Shown: positions 1-32,626 of the stretch, in pieces
Position numbering within the stretch: position 1 is the first letter of the stretch
Layout: every line of letters begins with the position of its first letter
Made by a program: the position numbers and the translations under genes
Notes under the pieces: model-generated
Databases searched by the model: none
What the model saw: only the letters and a program-made list of their open reading frames with translations
What the model was told of the DNA's origin: nothing
Virus record (IMG/VR): IMGVR_UViG_3300047320_000285
Coordinates: 124,001 to 188,000 of that record
DNA: 64,000 nucleotides
Strand: one strand, 5' to 3'

Positions 1-1057
1 TGCGATCCAGCACCGTTTCCCGATCCTTGTATTCGTCCATGGTGCGCTTGACCACCGCCTTCCAGAAGTCAATCACTGTGTCGGTCAGCTGGAAGACACC
101 GCTGCGCAGCTGGTCAAGCATCGCCAAAGCCTTCAGGATAGGCTGCAATTCCTTCCAGAACGCCGCATAGCCGTCCAGCATGGTCTTGGCCTTAGTACGG
201 AGTGCCTCATCGGTGCTCGCCCGTTCTGTAGCCTGTGTATGGCGCTGCGCCAGCTCCAGATCTTTCTCGATCAGTTCGATTTCTTTCTCCCACCGCATGA
301 ATGTTTCCACGGTAGCCGAGCCGGAGAGCGTCTGAGCCATCGCCGCCAATACTGCGGCCAGCTTGTCTGGGTTCGCAGGCAGCCGATCAGTGCCTTTGTT
401 CTTGTAGGCCACCGCAATCAGGTCGTGGATGGTCTGTAGTTTCTCAGGCAGACTTTCGAATTGAGCATGCACGGAGTCGATCTGCTTTTGCACGTTCTGG
501 GTATCATCGTCTTGCAACGGGTGGCTGGGTCCGAGCTTGGCGAGTGCCACCAACATCGCACTGGCCTTGACCACTTCGCTCTGGTTGCCGGTGTCGAGCA
601 TCTTCTCGACTGCTGCCACCGTCCCCAAGTAGGCCTTGGGGTCATCCAGCAAGGCGTGAGCGGTCGCAGACAGCTTGGCCGAATACTGCTTATCCAGACC
701 ATCGGCTTTTGCCACTGACTCCATGCGCGAGTCCGGATCAGCATCTTTGAAGCCGCGGATGGTTTCTTCCATCACCTCGTACTGATGGACGATCTCTTTG
801 TTGATCTTGCGACCCCGATCGCCCTTGACCTTGTTGAACAGCCACTTGGCGACACCTTTGATGGTAGCCAGCACCGCAGCGATCAGTTTAGCGATCTTGG
901 CCCAGATGGCGCGAGCCACGCCTTCCACCTTCTCGCCCAACGATTCCGTTGACAGCGCGAGCATGTCTTCCTGCGCACTCAGTGGCACCGCAATAAACAT
1001 CCCTTCAACAATCTCGACCTGCTCGCCTTCCAACGCGAGCTTGAGCAAACGTCCCAT
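1..1057 (-). CDS. Putative internal head (ejection/inner-body) protein, 3' end runs off the window
   Basis: Not in the ORF track because no stop falls in the window. Manual translation from ATG 1057 (SD AAGGA): MGRLLKLALEGEQVE...LALSTESLGEKVEGVARAIWAKIAKLIAAV...; sampled portions are stop-free down to base 1. N-terminal ALE/STE followed by an amphipathic helix is typical of phiKZ-like head proteins cut by the prohead protease. Confidence 0.7.
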   Translation of the reverse strand, partial: MGRLLKLALEGEQVEIVEGMFIAVPLSAQEDMLALSTESLGEKVEGVARAIWAKIAKLIAAVLATIKGVAKWLFNKVKGDRGRKINKEIVHQYEVMEETIRGFKDADPDSRMESVAKADGLDKQYSAKLSATAHALLDDPKAYLGTVAAVEKMLDTGNQSEVVKASAMLVALAKLGPSHPLQDDDTQNVQKQIDSVHAQFESLPEKLQTIHDLIAVAYKNKGTDRLPANPDKLAAVLAAMAQTLSGSATVETFMRWEKEIELIEKDLELAQRHTQATERASTDEALRTKAKTMLDGYAAFWKELQPILKALAMLDQLRSGVFQLTDTVIDFWKAVVKRTMDEYKDRETVLDR

Positions 1058-1070
1058 TATGCGTTATCCT

Positions 1071-1814
1071 TTACCAACGTTGATGTGGGGGGAGCGAGAG
1101 CAGATCGGCGTGGGCCATCTTGGCACTCAGGTAATCTTCCCGGGTGATCGGTTTCACCGTGAATTCTTTGTCATCCTGCCACGAGGAGACGTGCTGCTGG
1201 TAGGGGCCTTCCACTTTCCAGAAGCCGCGGTCCAGATGGTGGTTCTTGCTGAACTTCACCCCGCCTTCTTTGGTGATCTCGGCAAAGAGTTCCACTTCGG
1301 TGTAAGGCTTACGACCCGAGCGGGCAATCATGCGAATCGAGCGAAAGAACATCTTACCCGCATTGATCGCGGCGTACTCGACGGTTTCCGGGCTGTAGGT
1401 GGTGAGCCACGTCTCGTCCGATTGCTTGGCGTCGTACACCAGCTTGTTATTGGGCTTAAGTGCCGCGTCGAACGGAAACGCGTAGAGTTTCCAGCCGCCC
1501 TTGTAGGCTTCTTCTTCCTTGGTGCCATCACTGGCCAGCACCCGGAAGTCACCATCGGCCTGAGCGTAACCAATAAAGCAGCCCAAAATCGTCGGGGCCA
1601 CGGTAATGCGCGGCACCGTACGGTCTTCACTCGGTGCCTGACGACGACCAATCAGCGGGATCCATTTACGGATCGACGTGTTGGTGGACATATGCAGCAG
1701 GAAATCTTGCTCCAGCTCAACCGGAGTAACGATCTCCACATTGCGCTGGACCTTCTCCGACGCATGTTCCAGCCATTTTTCCAGTTGATCAACGGAGTCC
1801 ATAATCACCTGCAA
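1071..1814 (-). CDS. Hypothetical protein, possible ADP-ribosyltransferase-like fold
   Basis: 247-aa ORF with phage-like codon use. Motifs LHMS, EDRTVPRITVAPTILGC and VYDAKQSDETW. CDS is solid; the fold is inference. Confidence 0.7.
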   Translation of the reverse strand: MQVIMDSVDQLEKWLEHASEKVQRNVEIVTPVELEQDFLLHMSTNTSIRKWIPLIGRRQAPSEDRTVPRITVAPTILGCFIGYAQADGDFRVLASDGTKEEEAYKGGWKLYAFPFDAALKPNNKLVYDAKQSDETWLTTYSPETVEYAAINAGKMFFRSIRMIARSGRKPYTEVELFAEITKEGGVKFSKNHHLDRGFWKVEGPYQQHVSSWQDDKEFTVKPITREDYLSAKMAHADLLSLPPHQRW

Positions 1815-1854
1815 GTGAGGAAAATGTGAGAGGATTTACATAAAATCAGGCAAC

Positions 1855-1891
1855 GGCATAAAGCCCGGGGATTTCGCCCCGAGCCTTACGC
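1855..1891 (-). terminator. TATGCC-type hairpin terminator
   Basis: Minus strand reads stem TCGGGG/CCCCGG then GCTTTATGCCG, just downstream of the 1902-3293 gene. Confidence 0.55.
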
Positions 1892-1901
1892 GAGCCACGC
1901 T

Positions 1902-3293
1902 TCAGCGGGCTTGGAAGATCATCCGCAGCGACATGTAGTCGCAGTACTTCGCGCCCTTGATCGAACGAGCCATTTCCTTGGTCGCCGGGGACTTGAAACA
2001 CTCCTCGATGTTTTCCAAGAACTGCTGGACCTGACGAATCATGGCCGCCACTTCACGACCCGATTGCAGCTGATCCGAAGCGGTCTGTTCGAACTTGGTG
2101 AAAGTCGATTCGATCTTCTCGCCTTCTTGCTCGAACGCCTTGGCTTGCTTCAGATACGCGTCGACATGCTCCAGATACTGGAAGCCGGCATCGATAACCG
2201 TACCCACGTCTTCAGTGGTGAACTTGATGGTCATCTGTGCGCCCGACTTGATATTGCTGGCGTACGGAATCGCGTTCTTGGCAATCTTGAGGGCCGTGTG
2301 CTTCCAGCTGCCTGATTCGACCACTTTCTTGGGCGAGGCCAGTTCCGAGAGCTTGGCAAACGACTTGCCGCCAATCGACACGGGCTTGCGCTTGGTGCCG
2401 ACATCGACTTCCAGACCCGTGACCGAGAGGAACGGCTTACCGCCAATCAACGACCGATCGAACAACGCCGCCGGATGTTGCAAGCCTTCGATGGCTTGGG
2501 CAAGCCGAATCGCGTTGGCTTCGTCAGACAGCTTGGCTTGACCCAAGATGCCTTCGGCTTTGCCGTACAGCTCCGAGACCTTCTTCGGGTATTCGATCAA
2601 CACGTACGAGGACATCTTGACATCTTTCTCGATTTCCGGAATCAGGTCCTTCGCATCCCCATTATCGGTGGCAAAGTGATACCACATCTCGACGAGGTTG
2701 CCGGTGTGCTGGCGTTCGTGCCAGTCGTCTTTCTTGTGGTTGTACTCCGCCTTGCCCTTTTCCAGTCGCGTGCGGTACTTGCCGACGCGCGATTCGACGC
2801 TGCGAATCAAGTCGTTCCAGAAGTCACGGCTGTGCTTGCGCGAGACCACCCACTGCGTGGCCATGCGATGGAACCAGTTACGCAGAAACTCCAACGCCAT
2901 CTGGCCGCGTTGAGCCGGGGTGGTGTCGGCTTCCAGTGCCGGCAGCTCCATGGTTTCATCCACCCGGGCCAGTTCGTTGTTGATGCCGGTCTCAACCAGC
3001 TGCAACGCTTGGGGCGTACACTCGTCGGCTTCAAGCATCGACTCCAGTACAATCGCGTAGTCGTCAAGGTGTTCGAGCACGGCCGCAGTGGTTTCGATGT
3101 CGCGGCTTTGTGCAGCCAGTTCTTCGTCGGCATGCAGCAGATCTTCAACGAGGTTGTCGCCCCCGTCGATGAGAGCGGCTTCACCGACGTTGTCAGCGTG
3201 GTCCGTACTGGGTTCATCGCCCATACGGCTCCAAGTGCCACCACCGGGCGGTGGAAACTCTTCGACTGCAGGACGGCGGAGGGAGGAGCGCAT
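1902..3293 (-). CDS. Putative internal head protein (phiKZ-like, protease-processed)
   Basis: 463 aa. Acidic N-terminal region with AVE, PALE and MALE motifs followed by FLRNWFHRM, the propeptide + amphipathic helix layout of phiKZ inner-head paralogs. Confidence 0.7.
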   Translation of the reverse strand: MRSSLRRPAVEEFPPPGGGTWSRMGDEPSTDHADNVGEAALIDGGDNLVEDLLHADEELAAQSRDIETTAAVLEHLDDYAIVLESMLEADECTPQALQLVETGINNELARVDETMELPALEADTTPAQRGQMALEFLRNWFHRMATQWVVSRKHSRDFWNDLIRSVESRVGKYRTRLEKGKAEYNHKKDDWHERQHTGNLVEMWYHFATDNGDAKDLIPEIEKDVKMSSYVLIEYPKKVSELYGKAEGILGQAKLSDEANAIRLAQAIEGLQHPAALFDRSLIGGKPFLSVTGLEVDVGTKRKPVSIGGKSFAKLSELASPKKVVESGSWKHTALKIAKNAIPYASNIKSGAQMTIKFTTEDVGTVIDAGFQYLEHVDAYLKQAKAFEQEGEKIESTFTKFEQTASDQLQSGREVAAMIRQVQQFLENIEECFKSPATKEMARSIKGAKYCDYMSLRMIFQAR

Positions 3294-3332: not shown

Positions 3333-5357
3333 TTACCACGACAGCCATCTCGGCTTGCCGCGCAACTCCTGTGGATGGACGCCGACTAGATCACGAAACT
3401 CTTCAATCGCAATCGAGGGATCCATGGACTTCTTGCCCATGATTTGTTCCACCTGTTCCCGGCTCCACTGCATGATGTCCTTACTGCGGGTGGAGATATT
3501 GGGCAGGTTACCCGTGTCCAGATAGACGTTCCAGATGGTGCACGGAAACTTCTGGTCAAGTCGGTCGATGCGAGCGGTGGCCTGCTCGTACTCGTAGTCT
3601 CGAAACGGGGCGTTGGTCAGAATCGCGGTGGACGCCTCCACCACCGGCACGGCCGTGGAGAGTGAGTCGTACGTGGCCAGCAACGGATTGGCGTCTTCCT
3701 GTCGCTTAAACCGCTCCATGATCGCGGGTAAGTCCTTGTTGGTCTCACCATACACCACCAGCGGCTTATAACCCTCGCCTTGCAGATACGTCTCCATGGC
3801 TTTCACCACCGCTACGTACGAGGTGAAGATGATGGTCTTGCTGAGCGACGCATCGATCATCTCCGGCAGCCCCATGTGCGGCACCATGTCCACATGGCAC
3901 TGGGCGCGCTTCTTCCCCAGAATCCGACCCAAAGCTTCGCCCTGCACTTTCAGCTCGTAGTACTTCACCACCGAGCGGGCATCTAAGAACTGATGCTTCA
4001 GGTCACGCGGCAGGGTCGGGGCAATCATGCCTTTCTCGTACTTGTTACAGAACACCACCATGTCCTTCATGGTGGCTGGGTCGTAACCCGCGCGGATCGC
4101 ATCGACGTAGGCACGGTAAGTGCGGTACTGCTTGCGCTGCTCCTCGGCGTGCAGGGTCGCTTCAAACACCTGTAAGGCATCCCGGTAGACCTCGATAAAC
4201 AGCTCCATGTGCTCTTCGTAGTACGCCATGCGCTGCAAGATGAAACTCTTCATCTCCTCGCGGATCACGTCCAAGGTGTAGTCGCGACTGTTGGCAATCT
4301 GGATCTTGCGCTCGAAGGTCTGGGTCTGGTTATCGACCACATCCTTTTTCTCCACCTGAAACGTCAGCAGTCCCATGCGGTTACGCAGGATGTCATTGGC
4401 ACGGGCCGCGTTCTTCCCAAAGACGGCGAGGAACCGTTCTTTGGCATCTGCATCGAACAAGGTATCGATGGTCTCGAGCAAGGGCACCACTTCCTTACCG
4501 AGCGCCTTAAGCGGCGTACCGGAGGACCAGACGATATGCTTGGGGGTCAGCATCCGACACAGCTCAACGAACAGCTTGGAGCGGGTCGAATCCATCTCGT
4601 TGAGGTTATGCGACTCATCGAGCAGCACACACGGGTTGGTGACCATGTGGTGGCTGAACAACAGCTGGGCAAACGCCACCGCGCGATCGAGTTGCTCGTA
4701 GTGGAAGATGTAATACTTTTTGCCTGGCTTTAGCTCCTCACCACTCAAGGAATGCCAGTACGTCGGCGCTTTCTTGAAGCGATTCTTAAGCGTGGCTTCC
4801 CACACGTCGATCACCGAGTTCTTCGGCACGATCGCGATAGTGACATCGGCACGGGAGCACAGACTGATCGCCAGACAGCCAATTGTCTTGCCCGAACCCG
4901 GCACCGCCCCCAGCAGGTAGCCAGATAAGCCGTACTGGCTGACCTTCTGGTTGTAGGTCTCGAGGAACTCCTTCTGTTTAGGCAGCAGGTCAACCGTCAG
5001 TTGATCGAGCTGGCTGAAATCCAAGACATCCGGATGGTTCTGTTTAACCGAACGCATCCACGTATTCTGATAGATGAGATCCACGACACGCTGCAAGGCC
5101 CGGTAGTTCCGGACCGGATGCACGCGTTGCTCAAGCACTTGCTCAAGCGTGTAGACCACATCAGGCGCGAAAAACTTGTTGAACGTCAGGGAGCTGCGGT
5201 CATACTTGGTGAACATGTGCTGACCGACCTTGCTGGTCGACCAGATGTCCCGTATATCCCGCTGCACCGTCATCGCTGGCAAGCCTTCCACGACGATCTG
5301 GTCATGCACCTCATGCACCGAGATCGCTCCCACAAACCGCTTGACCGTGGAAAACAC
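3333..5357 (-). CDS. SF2 (SNF2/DEAD-like) helicase
   Basis: Walker A GAVPGSGKT, motif II LLDESH, motif III SSGT, C-terminal helicase motifs (LSTAVP, QATARIDR). Confidence 0.9.
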   Translation of the reverse strand: MFSTVKRFVGAISVHEVHDQIVVEGLPAMTVQRDIRDIWSTSKVGQHMFTKYDRSSLTFNKFFAPDVVYTLEQVLEQRVHPVRNYRALQRVVDLIYQNTWMRSVKQNHPDVLDFSQLDQLTVDLLPKQKEFLETYNQKVSQYGLSGYLLGAVPGSGKTIGCLAISLCSRADVTIAIVPKNSVIDVWEATLKNRFKKAPTYWHSLSGEELKPGKKYYIFHYEQLDRAVAFAQLLFSHHMVTNPCVLLDESHNLNEMDSTRSKLFVELCRMLTPKHIVWSSGTPLKALGKEVVPLLETIDTLFDADAKERFLAVFGKNAARANDILRNRMGLLTFQVEKKDVVDNQTQTFERKIQIANSRDYTLDVIREEMKSFILQRMAYYEEHMELFIEVYRDALQVFEATLHAEEQRKQYRTYRAYVDAIRAGYDPATMKDMVVFCNKYEKGMIAPTLPRDLKHQFLDARSVVKYYELKVQGEALGRILGKKRAQCHVDMVPHMGLPEMIDASLSKTIIFTSYVAVVKAMETYLQGEGYKPLVVYGETNKDLPAIMERFKRQEDANPLLATYDSLSTAVPVVEASTAILTNAPFRDYEYEQATARIDRLDQKFPCTIWNVYLDTGNLPNISTRSKDIMQWSREQVEQIMGKKSMDPSIAIEEFRDLVGVHPQELRGKPRWLSW

Positions 5358-5408
5358 AGTATCCCCTTATGAGTATCGGTGAGTATGATTAATCAGAAGA
5401 TTGAGCAC

Positions 5409-5445
5409 GGCATAGAGCCACCCATAATGGGTGGCCGCTTATGCC
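5409..5445 (-). terminator. GGCATA...TATGCC hairpin downstream of dnaB
   Basis: GGCATA-GA-GCCACCC-ATAAT-GGGTGGC-CGCT-TATGCC. Confidence 0.6.
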
Positions 5446-5447
5446 CC

Positions 5448-7028
5448 TTAGGCAAAGAGTGCTTGCGCGTCTTGCGGTTGCTCGTTTTCCCAGAACGGGG
5501 TTTCCTTACCCGAACCAATCGCGCCACCGCCCGGGCGACGCAGGGTCGTGTCCGGTCCGTTGATGTCGTCCAGAATCCCCAGTTGCGGATGGAATTCATG
5601 CACACAGTACTGGTCGAGGATCGGAGTTTGACCAGTGATCCGGTGCTTGCCACGTTGGTAGGTCTGGAAAGCCCGGCCACCGACTTTCTCGATGTGCAGA
5701 TACAGCTCGCCATCCACCTCTTGGTCGATCTGTCCTGAACCCGCGAAATAGCCCTTACCCGGCAGATCCTTGACGAAGTCGGTCTTGCCCTCACGGATCA
5801 ACTGCTTGCCCCCTGTGGAGATCTGATGTGGGGTCCAGAAGGCAATCTTGCGCGGGTTAAAGAAGTTGCGCACTCGCCGGAACATGTCACGTACGTCATG
5901 ACCGGCCGGGCCTTGTGAGCAACCGGTAGTCGGCAACATGTACAGGTAGTCGGCGAAACACGAATGCACTTCAAAGCCATCGGCTTCCCATTCGAGAATC
6001 TTGTTGCACAGCGACCGGTAGTCCCACTTGGTCGGATCCACCCGCAGCATGGTCGACTCATAGCCCGACACGCGCATCTTCTCGTACACGTACTTGCTGA
6101 TTTCTTCGGCCGACAAAGACTTCAGCTCTTCCTCTGTGACCACCGTGCGATTCTCGTTGGCCTTGAGTTTCATGTAGATGTAGCGCATGTTTTGCTCGAT
6201 GGTGTTCTCAAAACTGAAGAACACATTGAGCGGGGTCTTCTGCCGGTCAATCATCAACGGGGTATTGTACTGATTGATCTGACGGAAGACGTCCAGCGTG
6301 AAACCGGACTTGTTCATGTGCGGCAGTGCCGGCACAATCCATTCTTCGCCCCGTCGCAAGCCACCACGCAACATGCGGTTGATGCCCTGCCAGCCGGTTT
6401 GCAGAATCGACGAGCCATCCGCGTCTTCTTTCACCGAGTTGTAGACCTTGGCGATGGATTCGATATTGCTGAAAGTCACCTGTGAGACAATCGCCGGATC
6501 CTGACTGACCGCGTCTTGCTGGTAGGGTTCCAGCTCGCCGACCAGCTCCGCGACGAACTTGCGCATGTCGGGAATGGTCTCGGGCTTGAATACCAGCGCC
6601 ACGTTGGCTTTGTGCACCAGCGTCTTGACGTTCTCATTACGCAGGTGGTTCATCAGCGTGCGGCGGATATTCAGACAGGCCTTCTTGATCGAGCCTTCCT
6701 TCAGTTCGGCGGAGATGCCGCGCTCGAAGGTTTCGAACAGGGGGAGGTCATCCAGACAGTAGAGCTTGAGCGTCTGGAGGATCTCGAATTCCTCATACGT
6801 GTGATCAGTCGGATCATCCGCCATCGACAGGGCGAGGCGTTTGAGGCCGTCGAGCGTTTGCGAGGTCGGGTCCAGTGTGAGCTGCGTATTGGGAAGTTTC
6901 ACTAGCTGCAAGGCGTTGCGGACCAGCGCGGAAGAACGCTCGGTAATCGAGGGCAGTTGCGATTCACGATACAGCAGTGTAATCGCATTGACCAGCAACA
7001 TCTTGCTATCCAGAGGTTTGTTATCCAT
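5448..7028 (-). CDS. dnaB: DnaB-like replicative helicase (phiKZ gp118-like)
   Basis: GWQGINRMLRGGLRRGE, Walker A ALPHMNKS, FFSFEN, ADYL, TPHQIS, IDQEVD, RGKHR. Sits divergent to the gp119-capsid unit as in phiKZ. Confidence 0.9.
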   Translation of the reverse strand: MDNKPLDSKMLLVNAITLLYRESQLPSITERSSALVRNALQLVKLPNTQLTLDPTSQTLDGLKRLALSMADDPTDHTYEEFEILQTLKLYCLDDLPLFETFERGISAELKEGSIKKACLNIRRTLMNHLRNENVKTLVHKANVALVFKPETIPDMRKFVAELVGELEPYQQDAVSQDPAIVSQVTFSNIESIAKVYNSVKEDADGSSILQTGWQGINRMLRGGLRRGEEWIVPALPHMNKSGFTLDVFRQINQYNTPLMIDRQKTPLNVFFSFENTIEQNMRYIYMKLKANENRTVVTEEELKSLSAEEISKYVYEKMRVSGYESTMLRVDPTKWDYRSLCNKILEWEADGFEVHSCFADYLYMLPTTGCSQGPAGHDVRDMFRRVRNFFNPRKIAFWTPHQISTGGKQLIREGKTDFVKDLPGKGYFAGSGQIDQEVDGELYLHIEKVGGRAFQTYQRGKHRITGQTPILDQYCVHEFHPQLGILDDINGPDTTLRRPGGGAIGSGKETPFWENEQPQDAQALFA

Positions 7029-7116: not shown

Positions 7117-7788
7117 GTGTCAGGCAATATGACGAGCGGGTTAGTTCTTCCGCCCTGCATAAGAGAAGGCGACTGTGGAAAATTTTCATTCACTTCCTCT
7201 AAGGGCGGACCAGCGATGACCCACAGGAAAGACATCATTATTGTGCCGTACTGGGTGTACGAGTCGTTGCACCGCCACGGCATGAATCTGAGCGACTGCT
7301 TGGATTTCGAAAAGATTCGCGGGGTGTTCTCCCAGTCGGATCTGGTGCAGTTCCTCTGCAACCAAGCCGACATGAAGTACATCACCGGAAACGAGCAGAC
7401 CGGCCTTGAAGCTGATGCCGGGCTGTGGGGTAAGTGGAATCAAACGCTCATGACCGAAGACGCGAAGAAGCTGTTGTACAACGCGGTTTCGCCCATGTCG
7501 ACCGATCCCACCTTCCAACAGGCGGCACGGGATCGCCTGTTCAGCCCGGCCGTTAAACGCGCGCGGGATGAAGAAGCTTTTATTACATATGACATTGCAC
7601 CTGAAGTCGGGGCGATCGTCGTGTATCCCGGGCACTTCACCTCGGCAGTACTCGGAGAGCTTCAGGTCCGCGCCCTGCAGGCTATTCTGAAAGTATTGTA
7701 TGTGTACAACACACAGCACGAGGTGTCGCGCACACCGTGGTTCCGGCAGTATCTGACGGGGCTGTCTCTCAAGCAGGCTGCTGCCTGA
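7117..7788 (+). CDS. Conserved virion-associated protein (phiKZ gp119-like); start may be 7216
   Basis: 223-aa ORF between dnaB and the capsid gene, syntenic with phiKZ. Confidence 0.7.
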   Translation: MSGNMTSGLVLPPCIREGDCGKFSFTSSKGGPAMTHRKDIIIVPYWVYESLHRHGMNLSDCLDFEKIRGVFSQSDLVQFLCNQADMKYITGNEQTGLEADAGLWGKWNQTLMTEDAKKLLYNAVSPMSTDPTFQQAARDRLFSPAVKRARDEEAFITYDIAPEVGAIVVYPGHFTSAVLGELQVRALQAILKVLYVYNTQHEVSRTPWFRQYLTGLSLKQAAA

Positions 7789-7850
7789 GGACGCTGCCAT
7801 TGGCTTCTTTGCCCCAATCAAGCCTCTATTCAACGTTAAGGAAGACGTTC

Positions 7851-10097
7851 ATGTCCAGTCCGTTTCAACTCCGTGACAAATCCAAGGCCGGCACGATCGG
7901 CCACATGGTCCAACAACTCCACTCGGCGCTGAACCGCTCGGGCGCGTCCTTCGCCAGCAACGCTGCTGTGAAGCGTGTGATCTCGATGGAAGGCCTGAGC
8001 GACACGCAACAGACCGAGTTCACGACTTCGCTCGAGTCGTTGCAACTGTCGATCGGCGAAGTCTCGAAGACTTTCGACGAAGGCAAGGGCAAGTACAAGG
8101 TTGCCACCGAAAGCGGTGAAGAACTGCGTTTCTCGTCGCACACGACGGAAGCTCAGAAGTTCGCCGGTATGGTGGCTGGTATGCTCGCCGCTGACGTGCC
8201 GGGTTTCCTCGGTCGCTCGGTGACGCAGCAACCCGCGATGGAGCAGGGCCAGATGTTCGTCCCGGCATCGGGTGCCGACATGCTCGAGAAGCGCACGCAC
8301 GCGCTCGAAGCATACGACGAGAAGGAAAACAAGGAAACGACCGTGTATTCGGTCGCGTACAACATGCAGGCCGCCACGCAGGACGAGTTCGGCGAAGCGC
8401 TGTTCCCGACCTGTATCGTGACGCCGGACCAGTACGGTCTGACGATCTCGATGCGCCTGATCATGGTGATGGACGACCTGCGCCGCAACGCGTCGGGCGA
8501 AGCCATCCGTGACTTCCAGCGCAAGAACATCATCCGCGCAGCGATCGATCCGGCAGTCCTCCGCAACGATCTGACGAAGATCTTCCCGGTCGTGACCGAC
8601 GACGGCGTGGCACTGGGCAACTTCGTCGACGCTGCACTCGTGCCGCCGCAAACGATCGTCCACGAAGGTCAGTCGATCGAAACGGCACCGCTCGCCATTG
8701 GCGCGCAGTTCGACCTGCTGGGCATCTCGCAAACGGAAGCGCTGCTGCAAACGGGCACGCTCGACACGACCGACGCGATCGACCCGAACATCGTGCTCGG
8801 CGCGCTGTACATGTCGATTCAAGGCACGGTGGCCACGGTTGCCACGACGGAAGTCATCAAGTTCGGTAACGTCGGCCTGATGCAAGGTTCGACGATGACG
8901 GCGGCGCCGCAAGGCAACTACCGTCAGCAAATGCTGAACTTCGTGACGGACTCGCTGGCCGTCAACAAGAACACGGTGCTGAACGACGGCGCGGCTTCGG
9001 CCCTGCTGACCTCGCTGGTTACGGCTGGCGCGCAAGTCAAGCTGGCTGTCACGGTGGGCGGTAACGTCAACCTGCAGACGGCTGAAACGTCGATCTGGTC
9101 GGGCAAGGTTCAAGTCGCGGAAGTGCGTGACGCGAACAACAACGTGCTCGACATGACGACCGGCACGGGTCTGGCGTACAAGAACCTGTTCAACGGCGCG
9201 GTGATCTTCGGTTACGACCTCGACGCACGTCGTGTGAACACGAACCGTCGCGAGCGCGGCCAGCTGCTGGACATCACGTATCAAAACGTGATTTACGGCG
9301 TGCCGCTTCTGTCGCCGATCACGGCACCGCGTCCGCCGGCAGGTCCGCAGCAAGACGAAGCGAACTACTTGGCAGGTCTGATCACGGCAACGCGTATCCG
9401 TACGTCGAACGCCGCAGTCGCCAAGCTGCTCGAAGCTGAAGAAGCGCTGAAGGCATTCGTCACGACGAACCTCGGCGACGACCAGTTCGTCAAGCCGGAA
9501 ATCCTCGGCGTGGGTGGCTGGCTGGTGCAGCCGCAGTACCTGCAAGAAGACTACGCTGCACCGTCGGTCGTCGACAGCATCAAGTCGTACGAACGCGCTG
9601 CTGACATTCAGGCTTCGCTGGTCAACATGATCCGCGAAATGGCCTACCGCATGTACCGCGACTCCGGCTACAAGGCCGCAGCCAACGCGATGCACGGCGG
9701 TATCGCGCCGATGCCGACGGTCATCATCGCAACCGACACGTACATCGCGTCGTACCTGCAGGTGACGGGTGACTTCCGTACGCTCGGTAACGAGTTCAAC
9801 GTGAAGGTCGTGTCGACGACGAACAAGCTGATGAAGGGCAAGATCCGCATCACGTTCGGTGAGTTCGGCGAAGGCAAGGAAAACACCCCGAACCCGCTGC
9901 ACTTCGGCGTGATGGCGTGGAAGCCGGAACTGACGCTGATTCTGCCGACGGTGCGTAACGGTTCGAACAGCCGTGAAATCTCGGTTTCGCCGGCATTCCG
10001 CCACATCGTGAACCTGCCGATCATGGCATCGATCGACGTGTCGGGTATCGACGAAGTCGTGAACGCGAAGGTCGCCGTCAACTTCCACACGATCTGA
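7851..10097 (+). CDS. Major capsid protein precursor (phiKZ gp120-like)
   Basis: ATG 7851 with SD AAGGAAG, 748 aa, very strong codon bias. Propeptide with ISME/SLE/ATE/AME ends at THALE (residue 153), followed by AYDEKENKETTVYSVAYN. C-terminal NPLHFG and PAFRHIVNLPI. Confidence 0.95.
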   Translation: MSSPFQLRDKSKAGTIGHMVQQLHSALNRSGASFASNAAVKRVISMEGLSDTQQTEFTTSLESLQLSIGEVSKTFDEGKGKYKVATESGEELRFSSHTTEAQKFAGMVAGMLAADVPGFLGRSVTQQPAMEQGQMFVPASGADMLEKRTHALEAYDEKENKETTVYSVAYNMQAATQDEFGEALFPTCIVTPDQYGLTISMRLIMVMDDLRRNASGEAIRDFQRKNIIRAAIDPAVLRNDLTKIFPVVTDDGVALGNFVDAALVPPQTIVHEGQSIETAPLAIGAQFDLLGISQTEALLQTGTLDTTDAIDPNIVLGALYMSIQGTVATVATTEVIKFGNVGLMQGSTMTAAPQGNYRQQMLNFVTDSLAVNKNTVLNDGAASALLTSLVTAGAQVKLAVTVGGNVNLQTAETSIWSGKVQVAEVRDANNNVLDMTTGTGLAYKNLFNGAVIFGYDLDARRVNTNRRERGQLLDITYQNVIYGVPLLSPITAPRPPAGPQQDEANYLAGLITATRIRTSNAAVAKLLEAEEALKAFVTTNLGDDQFVKPEILGVGGWLVQPQYLQEDYAAPSVVDSIKSYERAADIQASLVNMIREMAYRMYRDSGYKAAANAMHGGIAPMPTVIIATDTYIASYLQVTGDFRTLGNEFNVKVVSTTNKLMKGKIRITFGEFGEGKENTPNPLHFGVMAWKPELTLILPTVRNGSNSREISVSPAFRHIVNLPIMASIDVSGIDEVVNAKVAVNFHTI

Positions 10098-11856: not shown

Positions 11857-13509
11857 ATGGACGCAGAACTGGCACGGCTCATAGCCCAGGAAACACCGGA
11901 CCTCAACCCGGATTTGGCCAACGGGTTAGCAGTCAAGCATATCCCGGATGTGGAGCCGTATATTGACTCCATCTTCCGGGCGCTGCAAAAGGGATTTCCG
12001 GATGGGTTTTCTTACGTCACCTCCACCCGTTGCGGGCCACAGGGTGACTTTGATGAGCTGACCAAGAAGAAGAACGGCAGTAAGCGGTACTACGATGTGG
12101 CGACCAGCCAACTGTTCATGACGATGCTGGTGTTCAAGTATCGGGGTGAAGAGATCCGGCGGCCACTGCAACTGCCTTATGTGGAAGACGCAGGGGTCAT
12201 CTACTTGGGCGGTTCGCGGTTTGTGATCTCGCCGGTGCTCTCTGACCGGGTAATGTCAGTGGACCTGAACAGTATCTTTATCCGCTTTAACCGGGGTAAG
12301 GTGACCTTCGAGCGCTCACCGCAGTATTTCCGCGCGAACGACGTGCAGGAAACGGTGGACGTGGTACACGGCAAGATCTATAACCGTCCCACCAAACAGA
12401 CCGGCACAGCCAAGCCCACCGTCAAAGGTAACACGACGCTGGTGCATTATCTGTTCTGCAAGTTTGGGGTGCATGAAACGTTTGAACGGTTCGCTGGCAC
12501 GGTGCCGGTATTTGGCGATGCGGAGACGGTCAATCATCACACGCATCCGCAGGATCAGTGGGTGATCTGCGAAAGCAGCGGTATCAAGCCGCGCGGCGTT
12601 GGCGACAAGATCTGGGTGCCCAGCCCGATTCGACTCGCTGTGCGTCGTGATCAGTACACGGCCACGATGAAGAATTATATCGCTGGTCTGTACTATATCC
12701 TCGATCACTTCCCCCGTCGCGTGGAGCTGAATCAGTTCACCGACGAGAAGTTCCGCAATCACACGGGCCGCTGGCGCGTGCTGATGGGCTATCTGATCTT
12801 TGGTGGTAACATCATGGAAGGTCACCTGCATGATAACGTGACGGATCACATCGGCAGTCTCGATGAGTACGTTGACGAAATCATGCGCGTGAAGTTCCGC
12901 GAGATCAAAGTCCCGGTAGAAGACATCTACCAGTTCTTCGGCATCCTGATCGAGCGCTTTAACCAGTGGTTGCTCGATGGGGCGGACAAGATCAACAGCC
13001 TCTATGACAAGGAACTCGGTGTTCTGTATTACGTCATGGAAGATGTCACGATCATGATCAACACGTTCTATTTCAAGTTGATCGCCAGTGCCAAGAGCAA
13101 GCGGGAAATGGGTAAGGACTTGAAAAAGGACGACATCGTCGACCTGATGAACAAGTTCCTGCGCCCCGGGAAGATCTACTCGGTCACCAAGATGCACCAA
13201 GAGGTGTCGACCACTTCGTGCTCGGGTGACAACAAGGCATTCAAAATCACCTCGATGATGGTGCCTCAAGCCAAGACCTCGCGACGCGCGGGTCGTTCTG
13301 ACAGCGGCGCGATGACCGATCCGGCTAAGATTCTCCACACCTCCGTGGCCGAGATTGGCGGGTATGCCAACATGCCCAAGAGTGATCCGTCGGGTCACTC
13401 ACGGATCAATCTGTACGCGCAGATCGATCGTTTTGGGGTGGTGCTCCAGAATCCGGAGCTGGTGTCGATCCTCAAGCCGACCGAGGAAATGATCCGTCGC
13501 AAGCAGTAA
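11857..13509 (+). CDS. Non-virion RNA polymerase beta subunit, N-terminal part (phiKZ gp123-like)
   Basis: 550 aa. LQLPYVEDAGVIYLGGSRFVISPVLSD matches the RpoB N-terminal LPx(n)GxFIINGxERV region. Synteny after the capsid gene. Confidence 0.85.
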   Translation: MDAELARLIAQETPDLNPDLANGLAVKHIPDVEPYIDSIFRALQKGFPDGFSYVTSTRCGPQGDFDELTKKKNGSKRYYDVATSQLFMTMLVFKYRGEEIRRPLQLPYVEDAGVIYLGGSRFVISPVLSDRVMSVDLNSIFIRFNRGKVTFERSPQYFRANDVQETVDVVHGKIYNRPTKQTGTAKPTVKGNTTLVHYLFCKFGVHETFERFAGTVPVFGDAETVNHHTHPQDQWVICESSGIKPRGVGDKIWVPSPIRLAVRRDQYTATMKNYIAGLYYILDHFPRRVELNQFTDEKFRNHTGRWRVLMGYLIFGGNIMEGHLHDNVTDHIGSLDEYVDEIMRVKFREIKVPVEDIYQFFGILIERFNQWLLDGADKINSLYDKELGVLYYVMEDVTIMINTFYFKLIASAKSKREMGKDLKKDDIVDLMNKFLRPGKIYSVTKMHQEVSTTSCSGDNKAFKITSMMVPQAKTSRRAGRSDSGAMTDPAKILHTSVAEIGGYANMPKSDPSGHSRINLYAQIDRFGVVLQNPELVSILKPTEEMIRRKQ

Positions 13510-20850: not shown

Positions 20851-23658
20851 TTACAGCTTGAAACCGCTATCGTCTTCGAGGGGGTTGTCACCCTTGTTCT
20901 CGTCGTTAGCGTTGGCGTCAGGATTCTCTTCAGTCGGACCACCCAAACCGCCCAGACCATCATCCAGACCCCCCAGACCCGTATCCAAGCCACCGAGTCC
21001 GTCGTCGAAACCACCCCCAAAGCCACCGCCACTGCCCGCGCTCGAAGTCGAGGTCGCTTCCGAGGTGGTGGCTTCTGCCCCGCCCTCAGTCGTATCGGCT
21101 TCTTTGCGTTTGGCTTCAGCAGCGTTGGCTTCCTTCTTGAGTTCAGTCATCTTATCCAAGAAGTGGTTGATGGTGGCGCCCATCGCCTTGGCGTGCTCGC
21201 TACTGACGTTGTACAGATCGACCCGCGGCTTGCCTTCTTCGTCGGTGGACACGAGTTCCGACAACTCCGAGAGCATGCCCGTTTCGGCCATGTACTTACG
21301 CGCGTAGTAGGCCTTGATGTTCTCCTTGACCATGTCGACGTGTTCCGACACATCGCCAATCGTATCAGCATTGAGGATGTTGGTCGAGACATAGTAATCG
21401 AGCGCCTTCTCCAGCGTTTCCATGTACTTGTCGAACGCCGCTGCTTGGTTCTCCAGCGACACCGAGTTCGGTCGTGGCAACGAGACCTTAAAGCCCAGCA
21501 CGAAGTCGTACAGCGCCTCGCGGATGATCAGCTCCTTCAGCTGGTCCTTGCTACCCTCAGCCAGCCGCGAGAAGCGTGCTTTCATCTCCTCATCGTTCTC
21601 GTAGCGACGCAAAATCGCGTCGTACTTGGATTCGATGATCTTGCGCAGATCTTTGATGAGACCTTCATCGTTCATCGCCACTTTGTGCAGGTGATCTTCC
21701 ACCAGCGGCACGAACTGATCCTGCAAGCTGATCACGTTCTTCGAGATCAGGATGTTGTTGGTCACGATCGAGGTGGCAAACTCCGCCTCATAGCCCGCAT
21801 CCACCACCTGTGCCGGCAGACCAAACTTCTGGATCGAGCGCTTGCGCAAGTCCTCTTCCAGCTCCGTGTCCGGCTTCACGTAGTTGCTGTTCTTCTCCGT
21901 GAATTCCACCGACGTATCCGGCATCCGGGGGTGACCCGAGAAGCTGAACTCGAATGCGGCCCGCTGCATGTAATCCGTCAGGTCCACCGGTGAGGTGACG
22001 CCGATCGGGAAGGCTTGCTGACGCGTGCGGGCGATTTCGTGCATGTAGCGCTCAATCGTCTTTTGCGGATCCGGATCGGTTTCATCCAGCTTGATCGCCA
22101 CGCCGGTGCGGCCGATGGAGTTCTTCATCGCCGCCATGGTGTTGGAGAACGTCAGCATCGAGCGCAGCGACGACAGGATCTTCATCTCGTCGAGTACCGA
22201 GCGACCGATCCCATCCGGGCTGAACTTGAACGCAAAGTACGTCATCAGCTCAATCGGCAGGAACAGCATCTGCGTGTGCTGTGAGGCCAGCGCGCGTGCC
22301 AGCATGATCCGGTAGACTTCCGGCTTATTCGCCAGTGCTACGCCGTTGGTGTAGATGCCGTTACGCAGACGACTGAGCAGATCCTGCTCCACCATCGCGC
22401 CATACACCTGAGCCGAGTAAGCCAGATGTTGCCGGTTACCGGTATCAAAGCCGCTGATGTTGGCCTTGACCTTGTTCAGCATCGCGGTGGCAAACGAACC
22501 ACCGGAGTTCATCCGGTTCCCCATCTGGGAGTAGATATCTTCCGGATTCTGACGGGTCAAGGGATTGCCGTCTTCGTCGATCAGCACAAAGAAGCCCACC
22601 TGCTGCTTGACGTTGCCCGGCACATACACCGGAATCACCGCTTCGCTGGGCAAGTGCATGATCAGCGGCGCACCCACCGTGCGACGGTTCAGGCGCTCCT
22701 GCGTGACGATCGTATCGATGGGCCGGTACTGACGGTTCGGGCTCTTGTAGAGCAGGTTATGCAGTTCCCGATCCGACAGTTTGGAGGGATCTTCCGCATA
22801 CTTCTCCAGCGCCATGCCGCCTAGCGCGCCCTTGACGCGCTCTTCGCGGATCTTCTGGTTGACCTGCGGGATCTTCAACAGGTTCTGGTTGTCAATTACC
22901 GAGGTGAAGGTATCCTGCGCCTTGCCACCGAAGTGGTCTTCCAGTGCCAGATATGAATCGTACTCCGGACCTTTGCGCCGGGACGGATCGTTAAACGACT
23001 CCATCGACAGCGAGGCTTGCTTGCCGCCGACCACGCTCTGCTGGCCCTTCTTGGTCGGATTACCCAGCAAGCCCTTACACTTGATCGAGCCATCGGCGTT
23101 GATGTCCGAGGACAGACTTTCCATCTTGATAAAGCGATTGTTGTTAATCACTTCATCGATGGCGTTTTCCGGAATCACCGCCACCGGGTAAGAACCCGTG
23201 TGCAGAATCATGTCCTTGAGCCACGAGGACATAAGCGGTTTAATGTTATAGTCGGTCTCGAAATACTTCCCCAACCGATCCACCAAGGCAGCCGCCACGT
23301 CAGGAGGCAAGCTGCCCTCCGGGGCGCTATAATTCACCTCGGTGGTCATCATGTCTTTCGGGGACAGGATACACGAAATCAGGATGGTTGCCGCCAGTTC
23401 CGTTTCCGGCAGCACTTGCATCACGGTCTCGGCGTCCGTAATGTCGCGCCCAATCCGCTCCGACAGATTCCGCAGTTCGAAGACGTTCGGTTCACCCGGT
23501 TGCATTTCGCCACGTTGGCTGAACTTGGCGGGTTCGCGGCCGGGAATCAGCTTGGAAAGCATTGCCGCCAGTTCCGGTTCATTCCGTACCAACGGCATGA
23601 CCGGATACTGTTTCCCCTTGCTCGCCAGGCCGATTGCGGTCTTAAGCGCTTTTGACAT
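20851..23658 (-). CDS. Portal protein (phiKZ gp129-like)
   Basis: 935 aa; YPVAVIPENAID, HLPSEAVIPV, YFAFKFSPDGIGRS. SME/ALE sites in the N-terminal third, acidic Gly-rich tail, divergent from the gp128-like gene as in phiKZ. Confidence 0.8.
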   Translation of the reverse strand: MSKALKTAIGLASKGKQYPVMPLVRNEPELAAMLSKLIPGREPAKFSQRGEMQPGEPNVFELRNLSERIGRDITDAETVMQVLPETELAATILISCILSPKDMMTTEVNYSAPEGSLPPDVAAALVDRLGKYFETDYNIKPLMSSWLKDMILHTGSYPVAVIPENAIDEVINNNRFIKMESLSSDINADGSIKCKGLLGNPTKKGQQSVVGGKQASLSMESFNDPSRRKGPEYDSYLALEDHFGGKAQDTFTSVIDNQNLLKIPQVNQKIREERVKGALGGMALEKYAEDPSKLSDRELHNLLYKSPNRQYRPIDTIVTQERLNRRTVGAPLIMHLPSEAVIPVYVPGNVKQQVGFFVLIDEDGNPLTRQNPEDIYSQMGNRMNSGGSFATAMLNKVKANISGFDTGNRQHLAYSAQVYGAMVEQDLLSRLRNGIYTNGVALANKPEVYRIMLARALASQHTQMLFLPIELMTYFAFKFSPDGIGRSVLDEMKILSSLRSMLTFSNTMAAMKNSIGRTGVAIKLDETDPDPQKTIERYMHEIARTRQQAFPIGVTSPVDLTDYMQRAAFEFSFSGHPRMPDTSVEFTEKNSNYVKPDTELEEDLRKRSIQKFGLPAQVVDAGYEAEFATSIVTNNILISKNVISLQDQFVPLVEDHLHKVAMNDEGLIKDLRKIIESKYDAILRRYENDEEMKARFSRLAEGSKDQLKELIIREALYDFVLGFKVSLPRPNSVSLENQAAAFDKYMETLEKALDYYVSTNILNADTIGDVSEHVDMVKENIKAYYARKYMAETGMLSELSELVSTDEEGKPRVDLYNVSSEHAKAMGATINHFLDKMTELKKEANAAEAKRKEADTTEGGAEATTSEATSTSSAGSGGGFGGGFDDGLGGLDTGLGGLDDGLGGLGGPTEENPDANANDENKGDNPLEDDSGFKL

Positions 23659-30496: not shown

Positions 30497-30549
30497 GGCA
30501 TAAAAGGTACAACCGATTCCCCACGTGCGGCTGGTGTGAGAAATCGGTT
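30497..30549 (-). terminator. Hairpin + TTTTATGCC after the tail-fibre operon
   Basis: AACCGATT/AATCGGTT outer stem; minus strand ends in TTTTATGCC. Confidence 0.5.
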
Positions 30550-30553
30550 GGTC

Positions 30554-31063
30554 TTAAGGATTGGCAGTCAGCATGATGTTGACCACGACATCAGTGGCAC
30601 CACCCCACGGGTTATCGTCGAAGTGCGCGATACACGCGAAGTTAGGCACCGGTGCGCCCGTCTGGATCGACACGTTCGAGCGTCCCGACACCTTGGCGAT
30701 GCCGGTGCTCCAGCTGGAGTACGCATTGAGGTTGCTCACCGGCGGATAGACCTGCGTGTACGAGCGCAGGCCCGGTCCATGGTCACCGTTAAAGTCATGC
30801 GGATTGAACGCCCCGGTCTGGAAGTTCACGTCTACCGAGCCATTGCGGTCCACGTACACATGAATCTGGGCGAAGACCACATTGTTAATCGGCACCAGAT
30901 GCGTCTTGCCGTACCAGAAACTCCACGCGAAACGGCCACCCGAGCCGACCCCGGCCAGCCCCGACAGCGCGCTGGAACCGGCGTTGTAACGCTGGGGAAT
31001 ACCGATCCCGCACTCAAGCATCGCCTGACCCATGCTGATGGGTCCGGAACTTTGCATGGTCAT
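30554..31063 (-). CDS. Tail-fibre tip adhesin-like protein
   Basis: N-terminus MTMQSSGPISMGQAMLECG...WSFWYGKT resembles fibre-tip adhesin anchor domains; directly follows the S74 fibre gene. Confidence 0.55.
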   Translation of the reverse strand: MTMQSSGPISMGQAMLECGIGIPQRYNAGSSALSGLAGVGSGGRFAWSFWYGKTHLVPINNVVFAQIHVYVDRNGSVDVNFQTGAFNPHDFNGDHGPGLRSYTQVYPPVSNLNAYSSWSTGIAKVSGRSNVSIQTGAPVPNFACIAHFDDNPWGGATDVVVNIMLTANP

Positions 31064-31066
31064 GGC

Positions 31067-32626
31067 TTAGACCTCCGCGTACTGGTACAGATTGATCTCG
31101 CTTTCCAGTTGATCCAGCTCCTGCTGGGCGGCGCCTTCGACGGCGTCCTTCAGGCCCAGATGCTCCAGCAAGATATCCAGCTTCAGATCCGACTCACGAA
31201 TCGCTTCGTTAAGCAGGGCGCAATACTTATCGTACTGGATCGTCAGATAGTTCTTGCCCGACTTGGACTTGCCGGTCACAGGGTCACGGTCAAACGGCGC
31301 CAGCCCGACGATTTCTGGACAGACCTTTTGCACCTGCTGCGCAATAAAGCCTTGGTAGTCGCGGTCTTCCATGCCCAGCTCGAGTTGCCACTGCGGCGTG
31401 TACTGATACACGATCCCCCACACCGCCTTGACTTTCTTGAGCGCGTCCTTGATGCGACCGAAACGATGCTTGAGTCGACCGTCAGAGTTGAACGCCCAGA
31501 TGTCATTGGCCGAGAACATCGTCCCGTTGGCGAAGATGTCCCAGAACGACACCGACTGGTTGACACCGGTCTGCGCGTACGGCCCATTCGGTGCTTTACC
31601 GTTAATCTGGTTTTGCAGGTTGGCGATGTTGTTGTTGAACTCCGTCTGGGCAATCAGGCCACCCAAGTCGGTCGAATCCACCGTAGCCCGCAACCGGGTA
31701 CCGTCCCACCCCAGCTTGACCTTGTTGTTGCCCTGACTGACACCCCCGCCTTGCTGCACCGGCGTAAAGCCCAGTGTCACCGTGGCAATCGCGGCTGCAA
31801 TCGCCGCTTGCGTTTGTGCAATGGTCCACGCCCCCACTTGTGCTGCTGTGGTGTTGTGCGGGTTGGCGGTGTTGCCGACGTGGTTAGCCAGACTCAGCGA
31901 GATCGCATTGGTGATGGCATCGGCCTGCGGGATCGTGTAGACATTCAACTGACTCGCCGAGACTCTGTGCGGGTTGTCGAAGTCGTTCACGTGCGCGGTG
32001 AGCTGCGCCTGAATCCCATTGGCCGTGCCTTGCAGCTGCGCAATCGCGGTGTCGATGTAGGCGTAGATGATGTCGTGCGACGCTTGGTCACCGATCTCGA
32101 TCGCATCGCGAATCCGGTCGAGCGCGTGCACCACGTACTCGAAGCCGTACACGTCACCGATATCGTGCAAGTGCTTGGAGGGCGGGAACTCACTGGGCTT
32201 GCCAATGATGTCGCCCCATGCCACCGGCCGGTTATCCAGCCCCAGCGCATCGATCATCTGGATGATGGCCTGTGCACTGGTGCCGTACGGGCCGCCGAGG
32301 GTCTGGTAGTTGATCGTGACGTTGTTGGACACCGCCGGATCGGTGATCATGATGATCGCACAGATCTCCTGACCATAGCGTTCCGAGGGCAGTTCGTAAT
32401 ATTCGCACGCGTAGTACTGCTGGACGGTCCCGTTGGAGCCGTCGGTCAGCAGCTGGCCGTTGGCCGCATCGTAGACCTTCAGGCTGGCCGTGAAGAAGCC
32501 GCCATAATTCGGCGCAATCGCCCGGAAGGTTCGATTGGCAATCAGCGCATGCGGCTCATTCTGAACGAGGTTGTTCGGATTCACCCCGGTCGGATCGAGC
32601 GGATACTGAATGACTAAAGGCGTCAT
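31067..32626 (-). CDS. Tail fibre with C-terminal intramolecular chaperone (peptidase S74)
   Basis: H..D..NPH repeats; SDGRLKH, GFIAQQVQKVCPEIV, LTIQYDKYCALLNEAIRE. Confidence 0.85.
   Translation of the reverse strand: MTPLVIQYPLDPTGVNPNNLVQNEPHALIANRTFRAIAPNYGGFFTASLKVYDAANGQLLTDGSNGTVQQYYACEYYELPSERYGQEICAIIMITDPAVSNNVTINYQTLGGPYGTSAQAIIQMIDALGLDNRPVAWGDIIGKPSEFPPSKHLHDIGDVYGFEYVVHALDRIRDAIEIGDQASHDIIYAYIDTAIAQLQGTANGIQAQLTAHVNDFDNPHRVSASQLNVYTIPQADAITNAISLSLANHVGNTANPHNTTAAQVGAWTIAQTQAAIAAAIATVTLGFTPVQQGGGVSQGNNKVKLGWDGTRLRATVDSTDLGGLIAQTEFNNNIANLQNQINGKAPNGPYAQTGVNQSVSFWDIFANGTMFSANDIWAFNSDGRLKHRFGRIKDALKKVKAVWGIVYQYTPQWQLELGMEDRDYQGFIAQQVQKVCPEIVGLAPFDRDPVTGKSKSGKNYLTIQYDKYCALLNEAIRESDLKLDILLEHLGLKDAVEGAAQQELDQLESEINLYQYAEV

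Follow-up and report, generated by a model that had tools for sequence, protein, structure and literature searches.

Does the minus-strand gene at positions 1071 to 1802 of the DNA examined here encode an enzyme, and is that enzyme carried in the virus particle? The DNA analysed (the window, 64 kb) comprises bases 124,001-188,000 of the 253,740-bp virus record IMGVR_UViG_3300047320_000285, which has direct terminal repeats and probably comes from a rhizosphere metagenome. A preliminary description made from the sequence alone had taken the open frame 1071-1814 for a cryptic ADP-ribosyltransferase (ART) that is injected or made late. Overall, we lean towards a divergent His-type ART-superfamily enzyme of 243 residues, produced together with the virion proteins and probably present in the particle in few copies.

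Predicted fold of the protein

The protein was modelled with AlphaFold from a 41-sequence alignment, and the model (predicted local distance difference test score, pLDDT, 90.3; predicted template-modelling score, pTM, 0.88) was aligned exhaustively with 48,161 PDB representatives, all counts referring to the top 50 rows. ART-superfamily chains filled at least 28 of these rows and 12 of the first 13, all on residues ~1-217, and the split beta-sheet ART core was recognised by structure comparison. The chains matched included AvrPphF ORF2, Scabin, Tpt1/KptA, Arr, RES toxins, pierisin, PltA, NatT, CARDS, MTX, pertussis and diphtheria toxins, ParT, DarT1, HopU1, LT, MbcT, PARP16 and XopAI, while the non-ART rows were weak and fell on residues 148-243. 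Two further lines are independent of our AlphaFold model. Language-model features of residues 22-185 gave Arr-ms for all 30 of the nearest named clusters (score 0.94) and, with Arr excluded, a phage cluster named DarT with PARP hits (0.90) followed by Tox-ART-HYD1 (0.86), and the Atlas's own ESMFold model matched RES at a template-modelling score (TM) of 0.53.

Because several lines, each weak by its own calibration, agree on one superfamily, we conclude from the predicted structure that the protein very probably has an ART fold; the fold comes out as ART-like, as the preliminary description expected, in two structure-based searches and in the language-model features. The Z scores of the structural alignment differed by less than 1.5 among ART clades and do not discriminate between them, and therefore we commit to no target; the guanine-specific nucleic-acid ARTs that stand as top structural matches of the model are a lead only. 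A weak candidate from the Atlas, DUF6886 (TM 0.37-0.42, features 0.85), was tried and rejected; only one such gene was found in 151 Actinomycetota genomes.

Conserved residues and candidate active site

Conservation was scored in 194 representatives of 200-300 residues and below 50% identity, with residues counted from the ATG at 1802. E130, W132 and G193 were conserved in all of them, E59, R65 and P49 in 99.5%, H37 and G103 in 97% and D124 in 94%; the four sequences without H37 carry Arg instead and keep all the other conserved residues. H37 and E130, the His and Glu picked by the preliminary description, are among the most conserved polar residues of the family. The segments concerned are the following:

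1686..1700, minus strand: strand-1 motif L-L-H-M-S, residues 35-39, of the H-x-[S/T] type, with H37 as candidate His for NAD binding (model strand 34-39; conservation)
1590..1649, minus strand: family-specific loop and strand 2, residues 52-71, with R54, Q55, E59, D60, R61, P64, R65 and RITVA (conservation; model)
1404..1433, minus strand: D124...S128-D-E130-T-W132-L133, with the candidate catalytic Glu E130 (conservation; helix 125-128 and strand 131-133 in the model)
1074..1097, minus strand: flexible C-terminal tail, residues 236-243, with W243 as the last residue (pLDDT 56-68)

The four motifs read earlier are present in the order claimed for them (LLHMS 35-39, PRITVAPT 64-71, YAF 107-109, DAKQSDETWL 124-133), of which YAF is not conserved in the family and drops out. 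The His expected on strand 1 was recovered, H37 lying in model strand 34-39 as His or, in the remaining sequences, Arg. Strand-1 His versus Arg separates two large ART branches. Residue 39 is S or T in 76% of the representatives, giving the family form L-H-[IM]-S. When the family was compared by hhalign with alignments of fetched Arr, RES, DarT and KptA genes, all three longer alignments, those with Arr, DarT and KptA, placed the partner's strand-1 His (FHGT, YHIT, YHGT) on H37; the scores were not significant, and the coincidence of these His residues is suggestive.

On strand 2 a Ser, Thr or aromatic residue had been claimed, and here the family is ambiguous: position 67 is T, C or S, near the almost invariant R65, on a strand (65-69) that is followed in the model by a helix (72-78) bearing G74/C75/G78, and no aromatic residue is conserved. 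The loop and strand-2 segment is also the sole part matched by gp283 of phage phiKZ. For the claimed catalytic Glu, E130 is the candidate, being invariant and lying in the model directly before the short strand 131-133 and after a loop with a short helix; its role in catalysis is read from conservation. The ranges of the structural alignments to ScARP and Scabin are compatible with this position, and in the model H37 and E130 appear to occupy the positions that the H-x-[S/T] motif and the catalytic Glu have in ARTs. The guanine-specific R-S-E type has Arg, S-T-S and Q-x-E, in place of which this family has His37, T/C/S67 and S/T128-x-E130. Arr-ms (PF12120) gave no Pfam match and an hhalign E of 0.33-0.5, with only the His aligned among the HGT...Y...DDPN motifs. 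At the C-terminus, the final residue W243 is conserved in 95% of the representatives and P238, five residues earlier, in ~90%; this tail looks like a docking peptide.

From this pattern of conservation, we consider the protein probably an active NAD-using enzyme. NAD+ would sit in the cleft that the split beta-sheet core forms, a ribose hydroxyl would be held by H37 in the H-x-S motif on strand 1, the near-invariant loop and strand-2 segment (E59, D60, R61, R65) would bind phosphate or the acceptor, and E130 at the start of strand 131-133 would activate the nicotinamide ribose, with transfer of ADP-ribose to a macromolecular acceptor. The protein would be made late, its gene lying in virion and late modules, and would enter the particle in few copies, like Alt of phage T4, to act as soon as the next infection begins. 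The fold-level assignment and two testable residues (H37 and E130) make the family directly approachable by experiment.

The gene, its family and its neighbourhood

The open frame 1071-1814 on the minus strand is present in the list of open reading frames (ORFs) and in translation, as the preliminary description had it, and is divided as follows:

1071..1802, minus strand: coding sequence of the predicted ART-fold protein, 243 residues plus stop (ATG 1802-1800, stop 1073-1071; homologs share the start Met)
1803..1814, minus strand: extension up to the TTG first taken as the start, with the putative ribosome-binding site AGGTGA inside it (direct sequence reading; homolog N-termini)

We take the ATG at 1802 as the likely start codon, since AGGTGA stands just upstream of it and the N-termini of the homologs coincide with this Met; the TTG at 1814 merely bounds the longest frame, and 1803-1814 is probably a 5' untranslated region carrying the ribosome-binding site. 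The 243-residue protein matches its own genome by profile at E 3.3e-111 and is single-copy there. An antisense open frame of 343 residues (window 798-1829, plus strand) spans the entire gene, in DNA of 57.5% GC; we regard it as a shadow frame and no second gene, because the homologs match the minus strand.

The Pfam scan of the protein gave no match, and in PHROGs it matches only PHROG 5043, function unknown (E 1.5e-38). By tblastn, homologs were found in 61 jumbo-phage records, every one annotated as hypothetical, with hosts in Erwinia, Serratia, Klebsiella, Pseudomonas, Salmonella, Escherichia, Vibrio, Burkholderia, Proteus and Pectobacterium; the closest is in Burkholderia phage FLC9 (57% identity). 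A word search gave 73 relatives and an exhaustive profile search 968 clusters at E<=1e-3, 402 of these at E<=1e-30, numbers by which the gene is real far beyond chance. The family profile found nothing in 301 sampled Pseudomonadota genomes, and within the sampled genomes the family is, by profile matching, phage-restricted. Phage phiKZ has no full-length homolog; its 154-residue uncharacterised gp283 (NC_004629 257085-257549) is a weak profile match (E 6.6e-6) limited to the H-x-S...EDR...PR core at profile positions 31-80. BFVD holds phage proteins of 110-190 residues with the same domain, and these together with gp283 indicate a wider family of small versions. Our literature search found no paper describing the family. 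A survey of jumbo phages reports several ARTs and KptA-type enzymes encoded in their genomes and, in its text, names none like this protein (PMC7824862). We take this to be a new phage-restricted family inside the known ART fold, distinguished by a conserved loop and tail of its own, and the gene belongs to an accessory family of phiKZ-like (chimallivirus-type) jumbo phages.

Among metagenomic relatives, fusions to GNAT occur on either side (P0066, P0071, P0151, P0078), a NUDIX fusion (P0072) is a real single ORF on its contig (818-2083), and tandem duplications are present in P0081 and P0199. The P0151-type sub-lineage has a 47-residue N-terminal leader common to virion structural PHROGs in addition to its C-terminal GNAT. 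The fused GNAT and NUDIX domains are generic, the NUDIX not being of the ADP-ribose type, and fusions with PhiKZ_VTX and the RNA polymerase beta subunit may be read-throughs of neighbouring genes.

Around the gene, three features were recorded:

1902..3293, minus strand: upstream neighbour, a PF12699 phiKZ-type internal head protein of 463 residues (Pfam E 2.4e-10)
1..1057, minus strand: downstream neighbour, a helical protein of 378 residues in full, clipped by the window edge (no family assigned)
1856..1891, minus strand: 15-bp hairpin, rich in GC, in the spacer that follows the upstream gene, resembling a terminator and lacking a strong U tract (RNA fold at -35.8 kcal/mol, z -2.8)

The gene had been placed between two head-protein genes bearing ALE. 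This holds for the upstream neighbour, which has twelve [SAG]-x-E sites, two of them ALE, and which alone matches PF12699, the 243-residue protein itself giving no such match. The downstream neighbour has LALE at residues 7-10 and is at most a candidate head protein; it belongs to no Pfam or PHROG family and has no similarity to the upstream PF12699 protein. ALE, being three residues long, carries little weight alone. The hairpin, which has a GC counterpart in the same spacer of FLC9, may act as a terminator that makes the ART-fold gene its own transcription unit. A promoter was also considered in this spacer and rejected, the AT-rich stretch 1832-1845 after the hairpin recurring in the window no more than expected by chance.

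In Goslar, RAY, PCH45 and FBKp24, the genes follow the order virion RNA polymerase (vRNAP) beta subunit, small gene, ~500-residue gene, ~240-residue gene, homolog and head maturation protease; the ~240-residue gene encodes the vRNAP subunit gp210 in Goslar (bioRxiv 10.64898/2026.04.21.720040). This vRNAP subunit and the protease are core genes (cg59, phiKZ gp176, and cg60, phiKZ gp175), and the homolog, RAY gp169, is outside the core list (PMC10299810). In pVa-21 the homolog follows the protease, in Noxifer it follows four virion structural genes, and in this phage and FLC9 the gene adjoins PF12699-type genes. Here the vRNAP subunit (homolog of RAY gp168 and phiKZ gp176) and the protease are directly adjacent at 196455-197817 of the record, 71 kb away, and the slot that holds the homolog in Goslar, RAY, PCH45 and FBKp24 is empty. 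In every lineage examined, the gene is co-oriented with virion genes and next to them. The neighbours differ among lineages and yet are virion modules each time, and therefore this is an accessory gene that has been relocated but always lies inside virion modules. Such accessory, non-core status suggests a role in host-specific conflict over one in basic assembly.

Elsewhere in the window, positions 3336-7028 (minus strand), directly upstream of the head-protein pair, encode two helicases, one of SNF2/ResIII type (674 residues) and one that is DnaB-like and divergent (PF20307, E 2e-115); genes for replication and for the head thus lie on one strand here, possibly with a common direction of transcription. 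For a 693-residue ORF at 30536-32614 (plus strand), PHROGs gave nothing at E<=1e-5. The remaining large ORFs in the scan did have matches: the major head protein at 7737-10094, a polymerase at 11857-13506, a virion structural protein at 20854-23658, an SbcC-like protein at 36952-39441 and, at 57833-63928, a tail fibre/transglycosylase protein of 2032 residues.

Packaging, rival explanations and known systems

The Goslar homolog gp211 was detected in purified virions by 4 peptides (22.6% coverage) at ~3.3-7.7 copies per virion, compared with 5.6-13 for the vRNAP subunit gp210 and 106-250 for the protease gp212 (bioRxiv 10.64898/2026.04.21.720040, Table S4); this detection is supportive, not decisive. 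By analogy with Goslar, packaging of the protein in this phage is a tentative proposal, somewhat doubtful as it stands, and injection is rather unlikely. The claim that the protein is injected is weakly supported: the gp211 copies in Goslar are few and close to background, and the family has no conserved propeptide or protease site.

A number of results weigh against a packaged ART. The Goslar copies are near contaminant level, the preparation having also held chimallin, PhuZ, dTMP kinase and other non-virion proteins (bioRxiv 10.64898/2026.04.21.720040), and in the GenBank records of RAY and Goslar the homolog is labelled hypothetical and not virion structural. Apart from the active-site S-x-E130, the family has no conserved [SAG]-x-E protease site and no propeptide, and in the model the N-terminal helices belong to the confidently predicted fold; therefore, the protein is not targeted by a propeptide in the way of PF12699 proteins. 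No ART Pfam model matched among 183 family members (41 + 142; only noise and the fused GNAT domains), and for this reason we assign the protein no further than to the ART fold or superfamily, and to no named ART family. Sequence and profile searches of the PDB found nothing at E<=10, and Foldseek against the PDB gave a best match of only E 0.23, its weak list including cholera, pertussis, LT and pierisin chains. A conserved strand-2 aromatic, as the middle residue of the ART triad, is missing, and the isoelectric point (pI) of 6.2 gives no basic surface hint of nucleic-acid binding. Finally, hhalign of the family with Arr, RES, DarT and KptA gave probabilities of 0.1-0.3%; in the control, these four compared among themselves reached merely 0.1-1.9%, and since true ART clades are equally unlinked, this failure is uninformative and no evidence against an ART fold.

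Three rival readings, and a more specific version of the ART reading, have to be weighed against these data. An ART-fold NAD+ user need not be an injected protein-modifying effector and could act late in the infected cell, as an NAD+ glycohydrolase or phosphorylase of the RES/MbcT/NatT kind, an RNA 2'-phosphotransferase like Tpt1, a nucleic-acid ART like DarT, pierisin or ScARP, or a small-molecule ART like Arr. Several of these clades are among the structural matches, but the small Z differences do not single out any of them, the clade motifs (R-S-E, Q-x-E, HGT...DDPN of Arr, R-H-R-R of Tpt1) are absent, the pI does not suggest a nucleic-acid substrate, the fused NUDIX is not of the ADP-ribose type and the Goslar homolog was found in virions; we regard this reading as quite unlikely. 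The more specific version of the ART reading is a virion-carried ART with a nucleic acid or the transcription machinery as its substrate during the earliest part of infection, while the phage is enclosed in a vesicle; it would form a new H-type clade with its own loop (E59, D60, R61, R65) and a docking tail that ends in the C-terminal Trp. It could, for instance, modify host or phage DNA or RNA in the guanine-type manner of its best structural neighbours ScARP and pierisin, or it could carry out modification of the co-packaged vRNAP, whose subunit gene adjoins in most lineages. We hold this version improbable.

The constant company of virion genes would also suit a non-catalytic accessory of head assembly or of the virion with an ART-like beta-sandwich, for instance one that loads or positions the vRNAP or internal head proteins. 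However, E59, R65, D124, E130 and His/Arg37 are near-absolute across 194 clusters of <50% identity, which is typical of catalysis, the domain is repeatedly fused to enzymes (GNAT, NUDIX), and the gene is not core (no full-length copy in phiKZ, and RAY gp169 outside the core set), so that head assembly in general cannot depend on it; such a role seems distinctly improbable. The weakness of each single line leaves room for a chance alpha/beta resemblance to ARTs in an enzyme of other chemistry using His, Glu, Asp and Arg, for example a hydrolase or a transferase that works with a different cofactor. Chance would scatter the matches over folds, whereas the list is filled by many mutually dissimilar clades of one superfamily, two methods that do not use the AlphaFold model agree, and the conserved His/Arg and Glu positions fit the ART topology; we give this reading the least credence of all.

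The divergent His-type ART made with virion proteins is thus the reading we carry into comparison with known systems. Nucleus-forming jumbo phages survive the first minutes of infection on capsid-delivered content alone, and the enzymes listed as delivered are few and for the most part uncharacterised. If the protein is an active ART in the particle, it would count as the first enzyme activity for host takeover or self-modification to be proposed for these phages beyond the vRNAP, and it would come from a large family (968 clusters) that is entirely unannotated, with no Pfam family and with PHROG 5043 listed as unknown.

Compared with Arr (an NAD+-rifampin ART, PF12120) and with the H-Y-[D/E] branch (Tox-ART-HYD1, DarT, Tpt1/KptA, PARP), the family is unmatched in Pfam, reaches an hhalign probability of at most 0.3% and has no conserved strand-2 Tyr; unlike Arr, it has a conserved loop of 25 residues between strands 1 and 2 and a C-terminal extension. 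The likeness to Pierisin, ScARP and Scabin, which are guanine-specific and act on DNA or nucleosides, is structural only. ART and GNAT domains pair in injected 'polyvalent proteins' of phages and conjugative elements, which were proposed to be host-takeover effectors (Iyer, Aravind and co-workers, as cited in PMC7824862). Unlike these, the present protein is encoded by a stand-alone single gene and not as part of a giant multidomain protein, with no Pfam match of the ART-PolyVal type; like them, its metagenomic relatives are repeatedly fused to GNAT, the same domain pairing.

T4 Alt is a head-packaged, injected mono-ADP-ribosyltransferase of the R-S-E clade, of ~76 kDa, with a cleaved capsid-targeting sequence. 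The present protein differs from it in its size (28 kDa), in having His and not Arg on strand 1, in lacking a conserved propeptide or protease site and in showing no detectable sequence similarity. It resembles T4 Alt as a phage protein of predicted ART fold that is encoded with virion genes and, in the Goslar homolog only, found at low copy in the particle. By this analogy, it could plausibly be delivered with the DNA and act before any phage gene is expressed, as T4 Alt does, and would then be the counterpart of T4 Alt in a very different virus.
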